A stretch of DNA of 64,000 nt from Blastocladiella emersonii ATCC 22665 (GCA_025594325.1 JANHCV010000002.1:1550001-1614000), one strand, 5' to 3'; counted from the stretch's first letter, positions 1,293 to 14,199 are shown. Notes: a model not told the origin generated them from the sequence alone. A program made the numbers and translations.

Positions 1293-1471
1293 TGTAAATA
1301 TCCGTGCTCCAGGAGGGAAGAACAGGCAAGGCGGTCGTCGCGGAGCTTTAAGCTGGCGGACTCCCAGTTCAGCCACATCACCTGACGTTCAATTTCGCTT
1401 TCTCTCCACCGCCAAGTCACTGCCGCGTCCTTCCGCGACCTCGATCCGTGCACGCCACATATGAGAAACCA

Positions 1472-3190
1472 ATGGAGAACGCCAAACTCGACTTGCTGCC
1501 CTCTGTCGTGATCGCGAACCTCGCCGCGTTCCTCGAAGGGCGCCAGCTCTCGCGGCTGCGGCAGACCTGCACTGCCATGAGCCGCGTGCCAGCCAACGTA
1601 ACGGCCAGCCGTGAGCACCTCGACTGGGCCCTTCGCCGCGGGTCATACACGCCGATACATCGGATTTATTTCGACCGTGCGATACGCCTTGATCAAAGTT
1701 CTGCTTACCGAGCAAGGCAGGTTCTGATCCGCGATGCAGTCGACTTGCTCGACGCTGACACGATTCGCGCCCTGCTTGACCCTCGCTCTCCGCGCGTGCA
1801 CGGCAAAGCGCTCGACGTGGAAGTGGCCTTCTTTCGCGCTCTACAACAGGTTGACCGAGGACGACCCGGTGCGGCTGAAATCGCGCGGATGTTGCTCGTC
1901 GACTCGCACATTTTTCCCTTCACGTTCGAGTTTCGCTACATGAGCGACCACGAATTCCTCGCACTGTGCACTACTGCTGCAGCTGTCGACATCGGCTCGC
2001 TTGTTGATGCGAATCTCCATCCGCTACACGTCTTGGTCGTCGCTGCCTTGGCCAGCGATTCGCGGACCGAGCGACTCCTTGACGCGTCATGGCCGACCGT
2101 CGTGTACAAGGCGTCTCCCAACTTGCCTGGACTGGTGGATGTGCTGCTCATCGCACTCCTGACAAACAATGAAGCGCCGACAATCAGCATTCTCGCTCGT
2201 CTGGTCACGGACCCGGCTATTCCGGTAGAGTATCCTGCTCACTGTTGGGAGTCTACCATGGATCTGGTTTTTCGCCAAGGCACGCCTGCGCTCCTTCGCC
2301 GTGTGTTATCGCACCCGGCCGCTCGTCTCGTGCTTCTTCGCCCCACCCATGCCCAGCTGTGTCGTGATATCGCGCAAGGAGATCCTACTGCGCTTAGCTT
2401 ACACCTCGAAAGCGGCGGTTTCCTCGAATCCAATTACGACGACGACGACGAGTACCACTTTCGCGACGCGGAAACATTCAAGGCATCAACGATCATTTGC
2501 CTCTCCTGGCGCCTTGGCGAGCTTGCGTGCTTTGATCGCTTGCTGACCATCGCTGCGAAGACCTGGTACAAAGGTCCCTCTTTCGTCATCGATCTCTTCC
2601 GAGAATTATGTATAAACTTGGACTTGGACTTGGACTTGGACTTGGACTTGGACTTGGACTTGGCTTGCGCAAGGCATGTCTTCACGCGACTTCTCGGCAT
2701 GGGTCCAACGGTTCACAAGATGATGGCTTCCGACTTCTTGTTGCTCGTTCGGCTCGGAGTCGGGGAAGCACGCGTGGACATGCTTGCCTGGTTGCTCATG
2801 GAAGCTGGTCCAGCGCTTGTTGAGGCTTCTGACGGAGCACTTGGTGTCGCAGAGACTTTGGCCACCATCACCGCGGCCATCTTGTTGCCCACCCCCATCG
2901 GTTCATTTGGTCAATCGGCTCAACGCCACCTCGATACGCTCACCTGGATCCTCAGCAACTGCGGTCCTGTTTCCACGCAGGACAAGCAGACCGCACTTGC
3001 TGCCGCGGATCCCCGCTGGAATCAGGCGATCATCGAGTACCTGCTGCGTGATCCAAGAGTTGATCCGTCGTTCGAAAACAACAAGCTGCTGGTTCGTGTT
3101 CAGCAAGCGGGTTTCCATTCGACTGCTGCACTTCTTTTGCGCGATCCGCGCGTTGTGGCCATCGAGCGTGCACGGTATGTGCAGCGCTGA
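1472..3190 (+). CDS. F-box-like / ankyrin-like repeat protein, paralog 1
   Basis: Intronless. ATG at 1472 is preferred over GTG 1448 because paralog 2 also starts MEN. N-terminal LDLLPSVVIANLAAFLEGRQLSRLRQTC fits the F-box pattern; C-terminal LLRDPRVDPSFENNKLL..VQQAGFHSTAALLLRDPRV is ankyrin-like. Confidence 0.75.
   Translation: MENAKLDLLPSVVIANLAAFLEGRQLSRLRQTCTAMSRVPANVTASREHLDWALRRGSYTPIHRIYFDRAIRLDQSSAYRARQVLIRDAVDLLDADTIRALLDPRSPRVHGKALDVEVAFFRALQQVDRGRPGAAEIARMLLVDSHIFPFTFEFRYMSDHEFLALCTTAAAVDIGSLVDANLHPLHVLVVAALASDSRTERLLDASWPTVVYKASPNLPGLVDVLLIALLTNNEAPTISILARLVTDPAIPVEYPAHCWESTMDLVFRQGTPALLRRVLSHPAARLVLLRPTHAQLCRDIAQGDPTALSLHLESGGFLESNYDDDDEYHFRDAETFKASTIICLSWRLGELACFDRLLTIAAKTWYKGPSFVIDLFRELCINLDLDLDLDLDLDLDLACARHVFTRLLGMGPTVHKMMASDFLLLVRLGVGEARVDMLAWLLMEAGPALVEASDGALGVAETLATITAAILLPTPIGSFGQSAQRHLDTLTWILSNCGPVSTQDKQTALAAADPRWNQAIIEYLLRDPRVDPSFENNKLLVRVQQAGFHSTAALLLRDPRVVAIERARYVQR
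2617..2663 (+). repeat. (CTTGGA)x7.8 coding microsatellite encoding a Leu-Asp run
   Basis: Seven perfect hexamers plus CTTGG, read directly from the sequence. Confidence 0.97.
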
Positions 3191-3499: not shown

Positions 3500-5152
3500 A
3501 TGGAGAACGCCATGATTGACTTGCTGCCCTGGGATGTGGTTGCGCACCTCGCTGAGTATCTCGACGCGCGCCAGCTCTCGCGGCTGCGGTAAACCTGCAC
3601 CGCCCTGAGCCACACGCCCGCCAACCTGACCGTTGTCAATGATCACTTCCACTGGGCGATCCTCAAGGGATCGTACTTTGATCTACGCCCGCTGTTCCTC
3701 GAACACGGCCGCCTCTTCAAGCCACAAGCCGCGCAAGAAGCACTGCGGACCCTTCTTCACGGTGCCGTTGACGTGCAAGACGCACACCTGCTTCACATCC
3801 TCCTCAACCCACAATCCCCGTTTGCGCTTGGAGCAAAACGGTACCTTGGGCAGGCTTTTTTCCACGCGCTCGTGCAGGTGGACCGTGTTCGACCCCGCGC
3901 CATGGAGATGGCGCGCATGCTGCTCGTCAGTCCGCTAATCTTTCCATTCTCGCTTTGGTTCGCTGGAATGTCCGACAGCCTTGTCGATGCCTTGTGCGGT
4001 ACCGCAGCAACCGTCGATTTGGACACGCTCAGCCTCAGCGGCGCGGATCCGCTTCACGTCTTGGTCCTCGCCCTGCTCGCTGCTGACGCGCGGACTACGG
4101 CATTCATTGACGCGTCATGGACGACCATCACAGAAGGCGGAGCCGACCTTTGGCCCAAACTCACGGATCTGCTTCTCATCGCGCTCGTGACCAACAACGA
4201 GGTTGTCACTATGTACCTTCTCAATCGTATCGCTGCAGCAACACCTTTGCCCGCTGGGTACACGGCTTCTTCTTGGGAATCGACAGTGGACCACGCCTGC
4301 CGCAGGGCTCCACCTGCTCTACTTCGTCGGCTCATGACCCACCCGACCGCGAACATCATTCTCGAGCCGAACGCAGCCAAGGTTTGTCGCCTTATTGCAC
4401 TCGGCAATGCGACGGCTCTTCACGGACGGCATGGAAAACTCACACGCGCCTTTTTCATCCGCAACAGTGGCAGGATCGATGCCTTCACGTTCATCGCCCT
4501 GGCTTGGCGACTTGGCGAGCGAACTTATTTTGAACGCCTGGTCGATGCTGCGCTAAATTTCAGGCGTCACCGTCCCGAACTCGCCGCGACCTACTTCAGA
4601 GCTACTTGCGTTGACCTGGACCCCGACGCCGCTCAATGCTTTCTCGCACGCACGCTCGAGATGGGCCCTGATGTCTTCTATATGATCGTTTGGGATTTCC
4701 GGCGCATCGCCCGTGAGGCGGTCAGCAAGGCTCGCCTCGACATGCTTTCCTGGCTAATGACCACGGCGCGCCCGATCCTCCTCGGAGCGGTTGAGCCACT
4801 TCATCAAAATGTCGCGAAGTCACTCGGCATCGATACCGCCTATCTTGTGTTTACCATGGTCATCCGCGTGAATGATAGCTCGGCGCGGCAGCAGTTAGAC
4901 ATGGTCGCCTGGCTTTTGGACAACTTCGATGGGGGCACCGCAGCCAGAAAGCAGACCGCTTTGGAGCACGCTGGAAACTGCGGAAACCAAGTTATCGAGC
5001 TCTTGCTTCGTGACCCGGGCGTGGATCCGTCCTGCAATGGGAACCAACTGCTCAGGTCTGTTCAAGCGCGCGGTCTTCCGTCAACCGAAGCGCTTCTCCT
5101 TCGCGACCCGCGCGTTGCAGCCCTCGAACGCGAGCGGTACGCGCAGCTCTGA
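3500..5152 (+). pseudogene. F-box-like / ankyrin-like paralog 2 with an in-frame TAA
   Basis: ATG 3500 MENAMIDLLPWDVVAHLAEYLDARQLSRLR*TCTAL. The TAA at 3590-3592 aligns with CAG (Q) in paralog 1. The same frame continues into the 3773..5152 ORF, which ends LLRDPGVDPSCNGNQLL...LLLRDPRVAALERERYAQL. Confidence 0.8.
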
Positions 5153-5224: not shown

Positions 5225-7340
5225 TCAGTCGTCGAGCGCGTCGAAGCGGAGGCCGTCCAGGGCATCACGCGAATTGAGATCAAACGGCTTCGGCCCGCCG
5301 GCGGGCATGATACCCCGCGCAACGGCCTCGTCGTCGGACATGTCCTCGTCCGTCAGCCCGAACCGGAGCTCGTAGGGCGTGCTCATGGCGACGAGGAACT
5401 GGTCCTTGCGCGACCCGTCGTAGTGCTCGGGCACGCGGTGCTTCTTGGCCGCGTCGCGCAGCAGCGCCGCGTTGAACGCGTGCGCCTTGACGGCCACGGC
5501 CTGGATGTGCTTGATCTGCACGTACGGCCCGTCGACGGTCGCGGCCGCCGCGGCGGCGCGCGGCTTGGGCTTGGGGAAATACGCGTGGTACGAGTTGGCG
5601 GGCGGGGCCGGGTCGGCCTCGGCCTGCGCCTGCGCCTGCGCCTGCACCTGCTGCGCCTTGGCCGCGATGCGCACGTCGGCGCGGAAATCGTTGATGAACG
5701 TGTTCCCGAACACGACCGGGACCACGGGCGAGATGCCGGCCTGCAGGAGCCGGCGCGCCGCGGCCTTGAACGCGGCAATCGACTCGATCAGGGCCGTGTG
5801 CGTGGCCATGGGGATGTATGTCTTGGCCTTGAAGGCAGCGCGCGCGGCCTTGGAGCCTTTGGTGTGTGCGACGCGGTCGTTGACGGCCTCCTCCCACTCG
5901 ATGAAGAAGTCGGCGATCTCGTCAAGTTCCCCGATCGCCGTGTGGTTGAGGTTGGCGATCCGCTCGCGGCGGCCGACGAACCCCTCCCAGTACTTGCGCA
6001 TGGACACAACATAGAAGTGGGTCGCCTGGACCGTGTGCGCCGCGTGCAGCAGCCGCCCGCGCGTGCGCTCCGTGAGCGAGGGGTCGGTCCGCACCGCAAT
6101 GATGGGCTCGAGGAGCACCGCGCGCATCATGAAAGGAACGTGAGCTCCGATACCCGACATGGCCTTGTCGAGACCCAGGGACGGGTTGGCCTTGGGCTGG
6201 ATGTGGCCGTGGGCGGAACACCCGGTGATGTTGTAGAGCTTGGCGAGGCGCGGCTCGTCCTTGATGTACTAGGCCATGTTGCGCATGCAGTCGGCGCTGG
6301 CGACGCCGCCCGCGTGGTGCTCGAGCGTAAGCCGAGGGTCGGCGAACGCGTCGCGCAGGCGCATCACGACGGACAGCGGGTCGGGGAGCCAGATGACGGT
6401 CGGGTTGGCCGCGGACACGAGCTCGGCGGCCTCAGTGTACGTCTAGTTGCTACATGGCGAGCATGTACGTGATTAGCAGCCCGCTCCGGCGGTACGGCCA
6501 CAGAGAAGAGCATACCAGTCCGAAGACCACGAGAGCACCTCGAAACCCTTGTCCTCGAGCTGACCGACGATCTTGTTGATGCGGCCCGCCACGATCGTCG
6601 ACTTGAGCTCGCCGTACGTGAAAAAGCACAGCGGGTGCGCGATTCGAGTCGCGTGGCACCACATCATGAAGATGACCGCGCGGCGCCCGGTGCCCGGCGG
6701 CTCGTCATCGTCCGAGTCGCCGCCCTCGCACTCGGCGGTGGTCTGCGCGAGCTTGATCTCGGTGATCGAGAGGCTGACCATGGCCCTCGGCGTGTTGAGG
6801 CTGCCCGCGCCGCCGATAGCCGCGACGGCGAGATCGAGATGGACCGCGGAAAAGCCGGGCGGGAAGTCGGACAGGGACGCCGTCGGCGAGCAGCTCGAGT
6901 CAATGTCAGGTGCTCCCGCCGCAGTCGCCGACTTCTTGAGGTTCTTCTGGTGGATCCGCTTGATGCGCTCGACCTCGCGCATCCGCTTGGGATCGAGCGG
7001 AAAGTAGAAGGGCGTCTCGTGGGTACGCTCCTGCGGCGACGAGGCGTCATTGGTCGCGCCGCACTCGGCAGCGTACGCGCCGAACAAGCTAAACGGAAAG
7101 GCGTCAGGCGTCAGTCATCACTCTCGTCTTACACTGGCGCAACTTCCCGCACCTGCTAGTTGACGCGGGCCCATTCTTCATGGCCGCAGCGGGAGGTGCT
7201 GTCGTGCTGGTGCTCGAGCTCGATGCCGAACTCGCCTTGGCGCGCGGCTTCTTCTGCGGAGCGCGGCGGCCGCGGGGTCCGCGCGTAGTCGGGGCAGCGC
7301 CGCGAGGGCCGCTCGTGCTAGTGCTATCACTGACCATCAT
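5225..7340 (-). pseudogene. P-element/THAP9 transposase-derived gene, copy A, two in-frame TAG stops
   Basis: Exons about 7340-7153, 7088-6516, 6449-5225. Collinear with copies B and C (RAVIFMMWCHATRIAHPLCFF, GFEVLSWSSD, WLPDPLSV, IANLNH). TAG at 6445-6443 and 6271-6269, frame otherwise intact. Confidence 0.8.
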
Positions 7341-7562
7341 GTTGAGGGCTTCGTCGAGTCAAGAGTCTTGTTGCGTTCGTTGAACGAGAGAGAGGAAGAG
7401 CGTGGGAAGAGGTTCGACGCGTTTGGCGCGTTCCGCCACACGCTCGACTTGAAACAAGTCGCGTTGCGCCACTCATTCGGCCCAACTCTAAACAGAGGGA
7501 TACGCCCGAGTCTGATTAGCAATGATACCGTGTAATTAGCAATATGGATACAGAATGAACAA

Positions 7563-9674
7563 TCAACACGTGAAGCCGCCGCCATAGCTGCAGAACGGGT
7601 TCACGCCGCGCCACTCGGGCTTCTGCTCGACCTCCTCGTCACTCGACTCGTCGTCGTCCTTGGCGCCGATCTTGAGCTCGGTGCAGGCGAACATGTTCAA
7701 AATGGACTGGTGGGCGTCGGTTCCGTCGTAGTGGGTGACGGCGCGGCGCTTCTTGGCCGCGGCGCGGAGCAGCTTGGCGTTGTGCTGGTGCGCCTTGATG
7801 GCCGTGTCCTGGAGGTGCTTGACGTGGACGCGCGGGCGGTCGGCGGCGCTCTGGGCGGCGCACAGGTTCGGGCGGAACTGCTTCATGGCCTGTTTCTCGG
7901 CAATGACGCCCGGGTCGTTTCGGTCTGGCACGCCGGCCGCGGCGCGCACGTCCTTGAGGAACTTCTTGAGGAACGAGTTGCCGAACGCGACGGGCGCCAC
8001 GGGCGTGATGCCGACGTGCAGCAGGCGGCGCGCCACGGACTTGAACGCGGCAATCGACTCGATCAGCGCCGTGTACGTGTGGATCGGGACGAACGAGTAC
8101 GCGAGGCTGGCCGTGCCCTGGGCCGCGCGCTGGTCGGCAAACTCCTTCCACGCCATGAAGTACTCGGCGACCTCGTCGAGGTCCGCGATCAGCGAGTGGT
8201 TGAGGTTCGCAATCTTGGCACGGCTCATGAACGAGTCGCGGTACTTGATGACGTCCGACATGAAGCAGCCGGTCGCCTCGACGGGGAGGAGCGAGTCGAG
8301 CAGCCGGTTGCGTGTCGCCTTGTCGAGCTTCGGATTGTTCTTGACGGCGTGGATGGGCTCGAAGAACATCAGGAGTAGCCGGTTGGCGATGGAGGTCTTG
8401 ATCGCGTCGATCTTGAAGAACATGCCGAGATCGCGGTCGCCCTTGACATCGATGTGGTTGCCCGTAATGTTGTACAGCGGCGCGAGGCACGGCTCGCGCG
8501 AGATGAAGTGGGCCATGTCAGCGACGCAGCCGGGGCCCGCGATGCCGCCCGACGGCAGCTCGAGCGCGATGCACGGGTCGGCGAAGGCGTCGCGCAGGCC
8601 CTTCATGACGGAAAGCGGGTCGGGCAGCCAGGTCAGCGACGGGTTGGCCGCGGACACGAGGTCGGCGATCTTGTGGTATACCGGAGTGCTACACGGTGCG
8701 ACTCCGATGTCAGCAGTGGCCGAAGCTCCTTGCCGCGATCCCGCACGTACCAGTCCGAGAACCACGAAACCACGCTGAAACCCTTGGCCTCGAGCTCGCC
8801 GACCACCTTGCTGATGCGGCCGGCCACAAGCGCCGGCTTGACCTCGTTGTAGACGAAGAAGCACAGCGGATGCGCGAGCCGCGTCGCGTGGCACCACATC
8901 ATGAACACGACGGCGCGGCACTTGAGGCCGAGCGGCTCGTCGTCGTCCGGGTCGCCGCCGTCGGTCTCGGCCGTAGCCGCCGTGTCGCTGCTGGACGCGG
9001 CGTCGGCCAAAGCACTGCCGGGCGCGACCTTGATCTCGCTGATGGCGATACTGACCGAGGCTTGGGGCGTGTTGAGGTTGCACGCCCCGCCGATGACCTC
9101 GACGGCGAGGTCGAGGTGGATGTCAGAGAAGCCGGCAGAGAAGTCGTACACGGGCGCTGGCGCGTCCGAGTCGTCGACGGGCTTGGCCGCCGCCGCTCTC
9201 AAAGAAGCCGCCTTGGACCCGACGGACAAGAGCATGCGCTCGAGGCGGCGCAGCTGCTTGGAGGTGTCGGGGTCGGGCTCGCGGTAGAAGGGCGTCTCGT
9301 GCGTGCGCTGCTGCGGCGACAGCGAGACGTCGTCATCGTCGTCCTTATCGTCACTCTCGCTCTCGGTCTTATCCGGTTCACCTTCGATATTGAACCCGGC
9401 CATGAGCGACTCGAGCATCCGCTTCGCCTCATCGTCAGAAGCTTCATGCGAGCTAGACAGTCGCGTGCGCACGTCAGCTTTGTGAGCTCGCACATCGGCG
9501 CGCCAGCACGTACAAGCGCGAAACGGGTTGCATTTGCGGTGTGGTCGCCGCCGTAGTCTCCGTCTTGGGGCGCTGCTCCTGCTTCTTGGGGCCGGCGCGC
9601 CGCCCGCGGGGTCCACGCGTGGCCGGGGCGGAGCCGCGCGGGCCGCGAGTGCCGGGAGTGCCGGTGGTCATCAT
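7563..9674 (-). CDS. P-element/THAP9 transposase-derived protein, copy B, intact ORF, catalytically degenerate
   Basis: Exons 9674-9514, 9452-8751, 8688-7563 with GTACGT donors and TAG acceptors. Motifs AGFSDIHLD, VSIAISEIKV, RAVVFMMWCHATRLAHPLCFF, GFSVVSWFSD, WLPDPLSVMKGLRDAF, FGNSFLKKFLKDVR. Confidence 0.8.
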
Positions 9675-9900
9675 GGTCACGATGCGTTGAGTGGTTACGT
9701 TTTCATGCAATCGTTGAGCAATTGCAAGAGGGAGAGGGCGCGAGAGCGCGCGCAGAAAGACAGGCGATCAGCGACTGCCTTCGCGTCCCTCACGTGCGGA
9801 TGAGCGAGTCGTGTCGCGTCGCGCTCTGCCGATCTACGGCTCGCGGCCAATGCGCGATGATGATGGTATATTTGCAATGAGGGTGGGTGTGGAACGCTCG

Positions 9901-10180
9901 TCAGCTCTCTTCAAACGAGTCGCTGCCCAGCGTGAGCGATTCAAGAAGCTCGCTTGCGCTCGAACAGCCACGTCGGGCGAACTCCACGGCCATCTCATCG
10001 AAGAGCTCACCGTCCGAGTTGTAGTCGTCCCAGGACCCGAACTTGAGCTCTTTCGGCGTGCCCATGGCCATGAACGACTGGAGCGGGTGCGGTCCGTCGT
10101 AGTGGTCGGGCAGGCGGTTCAGCTTGGTCGCGTCGCGCAGCAGCGCCGCGTTGAACGCGTGCACCTTCCGTGGTCATCAT
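9901..10180 (-). pseudogene. Internally deleted derivative (copy D) of the same family
   Basis: ATGATGACCACGG at 10180 matches the copy B start. After 16 nt it joins, out of frame, HAFNAALLRDATKLNRLPDHYDG...MAMGTPKELKFG, which matches the C-terminus of copy A. Confidence 0.8.
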
Positions 10181-10519
10181 TGCGACTGCGTCTCACGTAA
10201 GCTCATCCGTTTCCGCCGATATAGAGTGAGTGCGCGAAGGCCGACGCGCGTGTGAAGCACGGCTGCGCCAGTCACGTTGAGGTGAAACACGTCGCGTCGC
10301 TCCACCAGTCGTGATTCCGGCCATCATCGGTCCAGGGAACCCTTGCTCAGCCCAGGCTCGTCGTCCTTGGGGTTCGGCGGTCGACAGAGATTTAACAAAA
10401 TTGCTATGTAGTGATGACAAAAACCCAGCCAGTCGTTTCGCTAATCAGTGCCCGCGCTCGCCCGCGTGAACGAGAGGGTCGTGGTGGACGGCCGAGTCCC
10501 ACACGATTTCCCCGTCATT

Positions 10520-12483
10520 CTAGTCGAGATCAAAGTCGAGGTCGTCGATGAGCGCGTCGACGTCCTCGTGCCCGTCCTCGGTGCCGACCATGAGCTCGTC
10601 GGACGACTTCCACACGCCCGCGTCGTTGTGCGGCCCGTCGTAGTAGTCGATGGTGCGGTCCATGTTGATCGACTCGCGCAGGAGCATCGCGTTCTGCTGC
10701 TGGATCTTGAGGGCCTCGTCGCTGATATGCTTATCCTCGACGCGCTGGCCGCGCGCGGTGCGGCGCACCAGGGCGAGGAAACCGTTGAGCAGCGAGTTGC
10801 CGAGCACGACGGGGACCACGGGCTTGACGTCCGTCTGGACGAGCCGGCGGGCCGCGGCCTTGAACCCGTCGACCGACTCGAGGAGCGCCGTGTACGTGTT
10901 GGGTGGGATGAACGACTTGGCCTTGAACTCGGCGCGCGCGGCGGCCGCCCCCCTGGCGTGCGCGGCGGGCGAGTCGACGGTGCGGTCGGCGCACGCGTCG
11001 TTGAGCCGGTTCCACACGACGGCGTACTTGACCACGTCCTCGAGCTCGTCGAGCACCGTGTGGTTGAGGTTGGCGATGCGCGCGCGGCTGCGGAACGCCT
11101 CGCGGTACTTGTACACGAGCCCGATGTAGAGCATGGTCGCGTGGATGCCCTTCATGGACGCCTGGTGCATGCGCGTGGACGCGCTGAGCGAGCCGTAGCC
11201 GATGAGCTCCTCGATGGGCTCGGCGAACATGAGGCGGAGCTTTTCGCCCGTCTCGACCGTGATGTCGGTGAGCGTCAGAGGCAGCGACACGCGCGGGTCC
11301 GACCTGAGCTGGATGGACTCGCGGGTGATGGTGTAGAGCTTGGCGAGGCGCGGGTCGCGCTGGATGACGGGGAGGAGCTCGGTGATGCAGAGGGTGCTCG
11401 CGATGCCGCCGCTGGGCGTGACGAGCATGAGCTCTTCGTTGGCCAGCGCGTCGCGCAGGCCCTTGATGACGCATGCAGGGTCCGGGATCCAGGCAATGGG
11501 CGGGTTCGTGGACACGAGCTCGTTGACCTTGTGGTACGTCGAGGTGCTACACACACCGAGGTCAGTCAGCAGCGAGTTGACGACGCAGCCGCCGCACAAA
11601 ACGTACCAGTCTGACGACCATGAAATGACTGTGAAGCCCTTGCTCTGAAGCTTGCCGACGACCTTGTTGATGTGGCCGGCGACGAGGCGCGGGCGGACCG
11701 AGTGGTACGTGTAGAAGCACAGCGGGTGCGCGAGACGGGTGCCATGGCACCACATGGAGAAGACGACGGCGCGAGTCGCGAGGCCCGACGCCTCCTCGTC
11801 GTCGCTCGAAGCGCCCTCCTCGCTCAACGCCGAGATCTCGGAGCTGGGCGACACCTCGATCTCGCTGATGGCGATGCTGACCGAGGCCTTGAGCGTGTGG
11901 AGGTACTGCTCGCCGCCGATGGCCGCGACGGCCTTCTCGAGGTGCAGGTCCGAGAAACCAGCGGGGAAGCCGCACGGTGCGCCGGGCGCGCGGTGCTGGG
12001 CGGGTGTCGCCCAGTCGGGCAGCGAGTCGGGGAGCGGGAGCCCCATATCGCGCATCACGTCGTAGATTTCGGGATGGGCGGAAACGAGCAGCGAAGCCAT
12101 GTCCCTGAACTCCTGCGACGGCTCGATGACGGTATCACCGTCCACGTCCGAGTCGGCGCACGCTTCCCTCACCTTTCGAGCCTGCTCGGCGAACAGGTTG
12201 AGGGCGTATTGGGCCCCGCGCGCCTCGATGCTCGCTTCGGAGACGGCGCCCTTACTATACACACTCGCGCAGGTTAGTCAGGTCGATGTTTCGACTCGCG
12301 CACCGTCGCACTCACATACCCGCGCGACAGGAGTCGTGAATCGGCAGCCGAGGTCTCACTGCTGGAGCTCGACGGAGCGGGCTTCTTGGTGCGCGGCTTC
12401 TTGGCCGTACTGCGGCGACCGCGAGGCCCGCGAGTAGCTGGCGCGGCGCTGCCAGTTCCGTTACTGCTGGGGTTAGGCGTCAT
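10520..12483 (-). CDS. P-element/THAP9 transposase-derived protein, copy C, intact ORF, catalytically degenerate
   Basis: Exons 12483-12320, 12254-11607, 11546-10520. PSQEFRDMASLLVSAHPEIYDVMRDMGLPLPDSLPDW, GFSDLHL, LATRAVVFSMW..HPLCFY, VGKLQSKGFTVISWSSD, IAWIPDPACVIKGLRDAL, GGIAS, LGNSLLNGFLALVRR follow the order and spacing of P-element/THAP9 blocks as I recall them. Confidence 0.82.
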
Positions 12484-12757
12484 GATTCTGCTGCGTCAAG
12501 TGGCGTTCTCGTTTACATCAAGCAAGGGTGAGAAAGGTAGCGATGGTTGGAGCAAAGCGGTCGCTCGTCGATCAGCTGCGGTGGGACGGAGACTGCCGAC
12601 TGCGCCACTCACGTTGACATGAAACGCCTCCCGACTGGCGCAGCGCGTTGCCTTACATGCATGCGCGAACTGTTGCTCGCAAAGGATCAATCTATACAGG
12701 GACATGGCGAGTGGAGGTTGGGCTATACAATGGCGGCCGGGGCCCGGCGGTCCGCTC

Positions 12758-14199
12758 TCACCGGCTCGTCGTGTTGAACTGGCCAAAGTAGGCCTCGGTG
12801 GGCGGGTTCGTGTAGACGATCGTGTCAATGAACTTCTTGCTACAAGTTCCAGAAGAGTTAGCGACCACCCTCAACGGAAGATCAACAGTAACGAGCGCCG
12901 TACCGGTCCTTGAAGTCGCTGGCCATGGCCTGGTTCTGGGCGAGCATCTGGCGCTCCTTGTCGCGCTCCTGGCGGTTCTTCTCGCGCTCCATGAGGACGG
13001 TGGCGCGCGAGACCCAGAACTGGTGCTTGTCCCAGGCCTTGTTGTCGCGGCGCTGCTGCTCCTGGCGCTCGTGCGCTTCCTTGATCTGGCGCTCGCGCGT
13101 GTCGCGGATCTCCTGGATCTGCTCGGGCGACATGCCCTTGAACGCGTCGATGCGGATCCTGCGAGTGAGGCAGATGGTTAGTGGAGTGGCGGAGCGGTAG
13201 GATCAGCGATGAGCGTACTTGTGCGGGCCGGGCTGCGGCGGCGCGGGACGCTCGGTCAAAAAGTCGCCCGTGACGTGCATCTGGATCTCCTCGAGGTTCT
13301 TGGCCGTCTCCATGCGCGCGTGCTCGCTGTCGCGGAGCTTCTTCTCCTTGGCCTGTTCGCGGACGTCGGTCAGCGCGTGATCCAGCCACCGCACGAGTGC
13401 CCGAACGTACCAGCTTGCGGTTGAACTCGGCGTCGTCCATGGCGATCTGTCGGCGATGGCGGCGGTCCATTTCGGCGAGGTACTGGATGCGGCGGTTGTT
13501 GGCCATGGTCTCCTGCTCGCGGCGCTCGTCTTCTTCCTCTTTGCGCTTGCGCTCGGCCTCGTTCTCGCACATCTTCTGCCACGACCACACCTGCATCTGA
13601 TCCTTCTGGGAGAGGATACGGCGGTCCTGCTCGAGGTCCTCGCCCTCGAACCGCTGCATGCCGCTGACCGTGTTGCGCGGGTCGACGTCGCCGATGCGGG
13701 CCGGGTGGTCGTTCTTGAGCAGGGCCGGGTCGTACAGGTCAAAGTCGCGGCGCATGCACGGCTGCTGGTGGTCGCGGCGGAACGCGTCCATGTCGCGGTG
13801 CAGCGCGCGGCGCGACGCGCATACCTTGGCATCGAGCATCTGCAGCAGGTCGTTGGTCTCGGTCGCGACGCGGTCTACGTGCGGGAGGCGAGAGTGGTGA
13901 GTGGGCGACGGCTTGCACGAGAGAGGGAGGTAAGGCGTACCCGAGACATCGTTGCGCTCCTGCTCGATGCTCTTCAGTTCGTTCTTGACGCGGATCTGCT
14001 CCTCGAGCCCTTGGACGTCGATCTAGCGAGCCACGCTGGTCAGCCCATGCGCCGACGAGTGCACGAACCCGCAAAGCCGTACCCCCATGACGCGGACTTT
14101 GGGGTCAAAGATGCGCTTCATGCGCTCCTCGTCGAGGCGGCGGCGGCGCTGCACCGCCTGGTACTCCGTGAGGTCGAGCGGATGGTCGAGTTTGTACAT
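12758..14199 (-). CDS. RIB43A: RIB43A-like coiled-coil axonemal protofilament ribbon protein, multi-exon
   Basis: MYKLDHPLDLTEYQAVQRRRRLDEERMKRIFDPKVRVMG, DFDLYDPALLK, SGMQRFEGEDL, RIRIDAFKGMSPEQ, final exon YTNPPTEAYFGQFNTTSR* (TGA 12760-12758). Confidence 0.92.

Follow-up and report, generated by a model that had tools for sequence, protein, structure and literature searches.

A tandem array in Blastocladiella emersonii belongs to a probably immobilised, catalytically inactive and selection-maintained gene family related to P-element/THAP9 transposases

A stretch of 64,000 nucleotides (nts) from the genome of Blastocladiella emersonii ATCC 22665 (GCA_025594325.1, JANHCV010000002.1:1550001-1614000; here called the window) carries three genes, A, B and C, which follow one another in the same orientation on the minus strand at positions 5225-12483, together with an internally deleted remnant of a further copy. 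An original prediction made from the sequence proposed that the array descends from a P-element/THAP9-like transposase which was captured as a host gene and then amplified. The analysis presented here indicates that the array probably belongs to an immobilised, catalytically inactive gene family derived from such a transposase, which is maintained by selection and evolves by birth and death. The window would be the founding locus of this family, which appears to be specific to Blastocladiella.

Splice-aware mapping of the deposited proteins was used to rebuild the gene models in the window, and the first exons were placed by homology. The members of the array are as follows.

10520..12483, minus strand: gene C, with exons 12483-12320, 12254-11607 and 11546-10523 and stop codon 10522-10520; intact, 612 amino acids
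9901..10180, minus strand: internally deleted remnant of an A/E-type copy, in which the last ~58 codons follow the start codon out of frame
7563..9671, minus strand: gene B (H9P43_002455), with exons 9671-9514, 9452-8751 and 8688-7566 and stop codon 7565-7563; intact, 661 amino acids
5225..7340, minus strand: gene A (H9P43_002454), with exons 7340-7153, 7088-6516 and 6449-5228 and stop codon 5227-5225; full-length three-exon structure

The rebuilt models bear out the three predicted paralogs and the remnant, and also the two phase-2 introns which the paralogs were said to have in common. All six introns of A, B and C are GT..AG introns of 60-66 nts in phase 2 with a CTRAY branch-like motif, and intron 2 lies directly after '..TCG GAC TG' in each gene. 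Genes B and C have no in-frame stops, as had been claimed, despite the divergence of the array (pairwise identity among A, B and C is 59-64% for nucleotides and 40-48% for amino acids, far beyond chance). Gene A has no frameshift and exactly two in-frame TAG codons (codon 256, at 6445-6443, and codon 314, at 6271-6269). Independent short-read contigs from the same sample have no differing letter at either site, so these codons are not assembly errors. Gene A is a recent pseudogene; its two stops, where about 4.8 are expected for its branch in the neutral simulation described below, are consistent with a recent loss. The remnant retains an upstream element, the ATGATGACC start and the C-terminal codons (about 58). 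No further family members were found in the 64-kb window by tblastn.

The family is spread over at least four loci of the B. emersonii genome, and the copies outside the window are listed here.

Locus L001, contig JANHCV010000010.1: copies D and E, a tandem pair with three exons, two phase-2 introns and open frames
Locus L002, contig 1: copies F and G, a much more diverged tandem pair, with the position and phase of intron 2 as in A-E
Locus L003, contig 9: copy H, rearranged and deleted

A maximum-likelihood tree separates (F,G) from ((A,E),(B,H),(C,D)), with full support for the group A-E and for the pair C-D, and support of 94/97 and 85/92 for the pairs A/E and B/H respectively. These pairings indicate that the array had three types before copies moved elsewhere. 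The best-conserved parts of the family include a C-terminal block, KHIQ..A.K.H..NA.LLR.AAKK.R.P.HYDGP (window 7700-7840, 5400-5530, 10000-10167 and 10620-10750), which is the piece left in both deletion derivatives (the remnant and H) and for which no P transposase counterpart was identified.

Homology of the family to the P/THAP9 superfamily, as claimed in the original prediction, is well supported by comparisons of a predicted structure. An AlphaFold2 model of B was built on the alignment of the eight family members; it has a core with a predicted local distance difference test score (pLDDT) of 75-94 over about residues 230-520, and disordered termini. The best Foldseek matches of this model in the PDB were 6p5a_A and 6pe2_A, both Drosophila P element transposase, with E values of 7e-8 and 2e-7, and the next match had an E value of 1e-3. 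The same two chains came first with VIA-align (Z of 20.7 for 6pe2_A and 20.6 for 6p5a_A, with 314-318 residues aligned, against 11.3 for the next best), and the alignment, which runs from 157-596 of the model on 201-569 of the chain, takes in both RNase H halves and the insertion domain. Among the Swiss-Prot models the best two fold matches were P transposase and human THAP9, P-transposase-like proteins lead the AFDB fold clusters matching B, and the nearest clusters in the ESM Atlas were P/THAP9 for both B (0.92) and F (0.96). The best AFDB cluster match, A0A1Y2HQ86, is a 717-amino-acid 'P transposase-like RNase H domain-containing protein' with an E value of 2e-13, which beats the Drosophila protein; it may be the nearest outgroup of the family.

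The Pfam profiles agree with this assignment in part. PF21787 (TNP-like_RNaseH_N, cut-off 24.6 bits) was matched above its cut-off by F (35.2 bits) and D (31.5 bits), and below it by A, B and C (20.0-21.8 bits, E 2.5e-4 to 9e-4; 20.2 bits for C); the scores of A, B, C and E lie at 20-24 bits. PF21788 (TNP-like_GBD) and PF21789 (TNP-like_RNaseH_C) had no match in any member at E values up to 1-5, but the region concerned still aligns by fold to P transposase in VIA-align. Sequence searches against solved structures, using the single protein, the family profile, F alone or an RNase H-only profile, returned no P transposase. The RNase H-only profile did return TAL-effector repeats (whole-sequence E 2.8e-7), and these were rejected, as the best single repeat has an independent E value (i-E) of 6.2 and the match is probably a repeat-summation artefact. 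The matching stretch, GFSD.HLD.AV.AIGG...L.TPKASVSIA (window 9090-9200, B residues ~157-195), forms one helix and strand 1 in the model.

The modelled architecture is that of the Drosophila P transposase (6P5A/6PE2) and THAP9, in which a large alpha-helical insertion domain separates strand 5 from helix 4 of an RNase H-like core, with a helical region ahead of the core and an acidic tail behind it. The conserved sequence blocks also come in the same order; one difference is that sequence identity with the B. emersonii family is only 11-14%.

In DDE transposases strand 1 carries the first Asp and helix 4 the Glu, and the second Asp is found on strand 4 or directly behind it (PMC8230255). The triad of the Drosophila P transposase is D230, D303 and E531, and the [C/D](2)H signature of the P superfamily lies just after strand 5 (PMC8230255). 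The corresponding positions in the B model, and the residues found there across the family, are given below.

Strand 1, B residues 185-194, ..SIAIS191-E-IKV: first Asp position, S in B and C, T in A and E, G in D, and D in F and G
Strand 4, B residues 279-285, then D286: second Asp position, D in A-E, F and G
Strand 5, B residues 306-309, then D310-P-L-S313: D(2)H signature, D-P-x-S or D-P-x-C in A-E, D-P-R-H in F and D-P-V-H in G
Helix after the insertion domain, B residues 524-537, N-S-F-L-K528-K-F-L-K-D-V-R: Glu position (helix 4, ..D..(E/D)xFF..IR), K in B, N in A, C, D and E, D in F and N in G

The equivalents of the catalytic residues in B are therefore S191, D286 and K528, with D310..S313 as its D(2)H signature. 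No copy with a complete sequence behind strand 4 has lost the Asp at that place (the annotated model of A and the deleted H lack that stretch), and the helix-4 equivalent has no conserved acidic residue among A-E. Both the family alignment and the profile coordinates place G177 of D and D37 of F at the same Pfam profile position. The VIA-align range also agrees with the mapping of the sites (chain 201 corresponds to model 157, and chain 569 to model 596), given a disordered loop of 32 residues and an insert specific to B. On the basis of alignment, profile coordinates and model topology, A-E are very probably catalytically dead, as had been predicted for the array: two of the three carboxylates appear to have been lost in common across A-E. 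In contrast to an active P-type transposase, these copies have neither the first Asp nor the Glu of the DDE triad, and their D(2)H signature is without its His. As the substitutions are common to all of A-E, the active site would have been dismantled before these copies diverged.

The proteins might alternatively still be nucleases or recombinases with a non-canonical active site, for example one formed by Asp286 and other residues, which would fit both the retention of the Asp after strand 4 in the intact copies and the strong constraint on the RNase H part (the most constrained region, see below). This is very improbable. The replacing residues are not the same in all copies (the first position has S, T or G, and the third has N or K), which argues against a conserved alternative ligand, and the helix-4 equivalent offers no conserved acidic residue. 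Furthermore, a single substitution of D230, D303 or E531 is enough to cut excision by the Drosophila enzyme to about 10% (PMC8230255). The insertion domain of P transposase binds GTP through K385, K400, V401, S409, F443, D444, N447 and D528 (PMC7776569). Judging from motif order, the ligands D444 and D528 appear to be replaced in the family, with RIANLNH in place of FDxFNS (D444 to A) and S, T or K in place of D528.

The main rival to a selection-maintained family is that the copies have no host function and are what is left of an extinct P-like transposon family in neutral decay, with B, C and D simply not hit yet. We regard this as unlikely. Pairwise nucleotide divergence is 25% between C and D and 32-41% for the other pairs. 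A neutral simulation, run with the observed substitution spectrum and half the pairwise distance per lineage, gave an expectation of 4-6 premature stops per lineage, and the probability of finding no stop in either gene of a pair was 2.6e-4 for C-D and fell to 4e-6 for B-C. There are 10-17 insertion or deletion events per pair and all of them are in frame.

The ratio of nonsynonymous to synonymous substitution rates (dN/dS) among the paralogs, estimated by likelihood (GY94, F3x4), was 0.02-0.25 for whole genes, values which are rough because dS is saturated (about 1 to above 3). Constraint is uneven along the protein, which speaks against relics. Likelihood dN/dS is lowest, at 0.005-0.13, in the N-terminal part of the RNase H domain (with a core value of about 0.1); it is 0.17-0.32 for the insertion domain and 0.06-0.24 for the C-terminal part, and reaches 0.5-1.1 at the disordered N-terminus. 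The Nei-Gojobori method gave 0.8-1.05, which taken at face value is the near-neutral ratio of decaying transposons. A codon simulation with the frequencies of the family, including a GC content at third codon positions (GC3) of 0.91, showed that this method reads 0.28-0.40 for a true value of 0.1, 0.5-0.7 for 0.2 and about 2.35 for 1.0. Nei-Gojobori was rejected as a measure of dN/dS, as it is inflated 2.3-3-fold at the codon bias of this family; given this inflation, the observed values imply a dN/dS of roughly 0.3-0.4 at most.

The introns point the same way. For the pairs A/E and B/E, intron alignments are at the level of shuffled sequence (exon identity is 64-68%), but the position and splice signals are kept in 10 of the 10 introns of copies A to E. 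Introns are still alignable between C and D (68-70%) and, for one intron, between B and C. GC3 is 0.90-0.92 in the family, compared with 0.85-0.97 in the host genes of the window and 0.76-0.77 in the open reading frames (ORFs) of a Harbinger element at L001, and has not relaxed toward the noncoding level. The near-canonical copies F and G each carry a lesion (G also has N at the helix-4 position), and the copies without the canonical residues are the ones kept open. Taken together, these data show that selection guarded the frames of B, C, D and E after catalytic loss, with a moderate constraint on the protein which is strongest on the dead RNase H core.

Several observations weigh against a maintained gene family, and most of them count in favour of relics. 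About half of the family members are damaged: A has its two stops, the remnant and H are deleted, the promoter of E has been severed by the Harbinger insertion, F has a frameshift and G has a TGA at a position that is coding in F. In C-D, the youngest pair, the coding sequence is 75% identical, close to the alignable upstream flank (about 78%) and the introns (68-70%). The saturation of dS and the Nei-Gojobori values also belong here, as does the basis of the catalytic mapping, which is profile coordinates, strand and helix topology and motif order, not residue-level superposition. No homologs outside B. emersonii were found by a scan of 1.84 billion representatives with a hidden Markov model (HMM) of the A-E profile, or by two word-index searches of a 5.8-billion index. 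No orthologs or synteny were found in other species, which is a weak negative as few blastoclad genomes exist. No RNA runs are listed for the 5.4-kb stretch that spans B, the remnant and C, a search with an exon of B against runs of any kind listed only DNA runs of the source sample, and the annotation of the B. emersonii genome is ab initio. The genome paper of B. emersonii contains no transposon analysis, and a literature search returned no paper linking this species with transposases; 23,370 B. emersonii expressed sequence tags (ESTs) are mentioned in PMC9730499. With regard to the predicted capture and amplification, the amplification and the selection on the frames are borne out, whereas capture as a host gene is probable as the best reading of a family which also decays.

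The amplification concerned resident DNA and not an element bounded by terminal inverted repeats (TIRs). Neither flanking inverted repeats nor target-site duplications were found around any unit, with the proviso that very degenerate repeats could be missed; an active P-type transposon differs in having terminal repeats of the 31-bp type and target duplications. The window at 10564-12839 aligns with L001 7015-4709 at 71% nucleotide identity, and this alignment reaches into a neighbouring gene of the array.

12760..12842, minus strand: last exon of the RIB43A gene, a neighbour outside the family, with a degenerate copy upstream of D at L001

Beside C this exon is intact and in use, and the copy upstream of D (L001 4709-4800) is degenerate with an 11-nt deletion. 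The 3' side is also collinear, as the 3' flank of C and the upstream element of the remnant correspond to the 3' flank of D and the upstream element of E. The RIB43A pseudo-exon and these collinear flanks indicate that the L001 pair arose when the window segment [RIB43A-3' exon]-[C-type]-[E-type] underwent a segmental duplication. By this comparison the remnant is taken to be what is left of the E-type partner in the window, and the mode of spread is judged to be chromosomal DNA duplication, not excision and integration. Transposition of D-E into a WD40 gene had been considered, and was dropped in favour of segmental duplication once the RIB43A pseudo-exon was seen.

The way in which the copies spread also bears on a second alternative, that they are non-catalytic variants of a living P-type system, comparable with the KP or 66-kDa repressors of Drosophila P elements, and are kept because they modulate an autonomous element elsewhere. 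The genome does contain more canonical relatives, F and G, which keep D, D and the D(2)H (with an acidic residue at the third position in F and N in G), and internally deleted copies like the remnant and H are what P elements typically produce. We consider this quite unlikely, as F and G are themselves damaged, the family has no THAP domain, by which P repressors recognise the ends of the element, terminal repeats were not found around the units, and the copies spread by segmental duplication along with host sequence.

The surroundings of D and E at L001 are themselves rearranged. A PIF/Harbinger element of 2.46 kb (L001 7294-9758) lies 3-6 nts before the ATG of E and parts this gene from its upstream element. 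Its TIRs begin GGGCCCGTTTGGTTC, it has a TTA target duplication and it looks recent; its ORFs are a DDE_Tnp_4/HTH_Tnp_4 frame (8651-9652, minus strand) and a second frame at 7437-7901. WD40 fragments at L001 3764-4450 and 13860-14258 flank the D-E block, which also contains a leucine-rich repeat (LRR) ORF (11865-13586, minus strand). The two fragments match positions 5-69 and 155-213 of the same beta-propeller profile, and may represent one WD40 gene split by about 9 kb of inserted DNA.

Two further conserved features accompany the family, one in exon 1 and the other upstream of the start codon.

9588..9620, minus strand: basic motif in exon 1 of B, APATRGPRGRR..KK, with an equivalent in exon 1 of A and C
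12600..12625, minus strand: conserved upstream element of C, GTTTCAnnTCAACGTGAnTGGCGCAG, about 120 nts before the ATG
10263..10288, minus strand: conserved upstream element of the remnant

The motif in exon 1, AP.(T/A)RGPRGRR..KKPR, is kept within an N-terminus whose identity is otherwise only 24-37%, and it occupies the place that the THAP zinc finger has in P transposases. Exon 1 has no Pfam match to THAP and contains no cysteine. The motif resembles an AT-hook or a nuclear-localisation signal, with no profile match; an AT-hook reading of exon 1 was rejected, as Pfam AT_hook gave no match at E values up to 1 and the motif is PRGRR, not RGRP. The upstream element (26-35 nts, GACGCG..TTTCAnnTCAACGTGAnTGGCGCAG, with an E-box-like core) is found about 100-130 nts before the ATG of every copy, where 0 matches are expected by chance. 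Genes A and B have it in a degenerate form, and even the deleted copies still carry it. The element was always on the gene strand and never seen inverted with up to 3 mismatches allowed (26 nts), which suggests that it behaves as a promoter element travelling with the unit.

The history of a family maintained by selection in this way may be reconstructed as follows. The body of the ancestral transposase, that is the helical region, the split RNase H-like core, the alpha-helical insertion domain and the acidic tail, would have been kept, whereas the first Asp, the Glu, the His of D(2)H, the THAP finger and the terminal inverted repeats would have been lost before A-E diverged. A short conserved basic exon (..RGPRGRR..KKPR..) would have replaced the THAP zinc finger. 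Afterwards the genes would have multiplied by tandem and segmental duplication, followed by birth and death in which B, C and D are kept open by purifying selection while A, the remnant and H decay. Since the cutting residues and the transposon ends are lost and copies are kept readable by selection, the protein probably has a job other than cutting. It would no longer cut or join DNA, and is probably a nuclear DNA- or chromatin-binding factor which uses the DNA-contacting scaffold and the basic N-terminal motif; transcription would start from the promoter element carried along by each copy, and restraint of related transposons is one candidate process. We tentatively propose that these are lineage-specific, selection-preserved dead P/THAP9-type proteins, with the basic motif in place of THAP, which would work by binding DNA or chromatin, for instance to repress transposons in a sequence-directed way or to regulate stage-specific genes; this is a possibility that we hold with somewhat less than even confidence.

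The array lies between an ankyrin-like ORF (plus strand, ending at 5152) on one side and, on the other, the RIB43A gene, whose end on the minus strand is near 12760. The long ORFs to the left of the array at 1352-3187 and 3593-5149 (plus strand) have a GC3 of 0.64-0.66, compared with 0.85-0.97 in other frames of the window, and their codon usage is atypical for the B. emersonii genome. Four of the deposited gene models (window 5225-13839; L001 3764-7101; L002 10001-11405) were found to be wrong, and these mis-annotations in the reference genome are corrected here.

H9P43_002456: RIB43A fused to C
'rRNA-processing protein': WD40 gene fused to D
H9P43_002454 (A): invented introns that hop over both stops
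H9P43_000371 (F): frameshift concealed by a 29-nt 'intron'

New regulators have repeatedly arisen through the domestication of transposases. To our knowledge, the domesticated cases in the P superfamily are all from animals, namely THAP9 and the Drosophila P-neogenes. The obscura-group P-neogenes, which Miller et al. are said to have described in PNAS in 1992, reportedly lack terminal repeats and form stationary tandem arrays of diverged units with their own promoters; they reportedly keep the THAP N-terminus and encode a repressor-like protein without the C-terminal catalytic part. They are the classic example of transposase exaptation and the nearest precedent for the B. emersonii array. The fungal family resembles them in being a stationary tandem cluster of diverged P-superfamily derivatives which has lost its terminal repeats. 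The two differ in what was kept, as the flies retain THAP and drop the catalytic part, whereas the fungal genes retain a dead catalytic scaffold without THAP. They also differ in the kingdom of the host, and in that the fungal family occupies its four or more loci with birth and death. It would represent the opposite outcome to the fly neogenes, with the scaffold kept around a dismantled site and the DNA-recognition domain replaced.

The novelty claimed in the original prediction holds for the fungal host and for the architecture, but not for the tandem arrangement. Domesticated P-derived tandem clusters are already known from Drosophila guanche, and are presented as the first exapted transposase genes described in the passage of PMC8616336 that cites Miller et al. 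1992. In fungi, P elements have been described as very rare ('single occurrences'), and the reports concern Allomyces and Pucciniales (PMC5751038). Those of Allomyces, which is also a blastocladiomycete, and of Pucciniales belong to the same superfamily as the B. emersonii genes. They differ in being counted as transposon copies, whereas the B. emersonii units have no ends, an inactivated site in common and frames under selection. Vertebrate THAP9, for its part, keeps both the THAP domain and the catalytic part and is still active (PMC8230255).

A likeness in the use of the protein may be seen in other full-length domesticated transposases with altered catalytic sites, such as the hAT-derived genes of the ZBED/GTF2IRD2 type and the PIF-derived genes, in which the transposase body is kept as a DNA- or chromatin-binding scaffold after the loss of mobility; several domesticated transposases of the hAT and PIF types appear as weaker Swiss-Prot fold matches to B. 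They belong to other superfamilies and their orthologs are conserved across many species. The B. emersonii genome holds all stages together, with near-canonical broken copies, dead-site copies that are open, fresh pseudogenes and deletion derivatives, and this natural series is useful for asking what selection keeps in a transposase body after transposition stops. If the account favoured here is true, Fungi would have their first domesticated gene family of the P superfamily, one which parallels vertebrate THAP9 and the P-neogenes of Drosophila independently and has been caught while still turning over.

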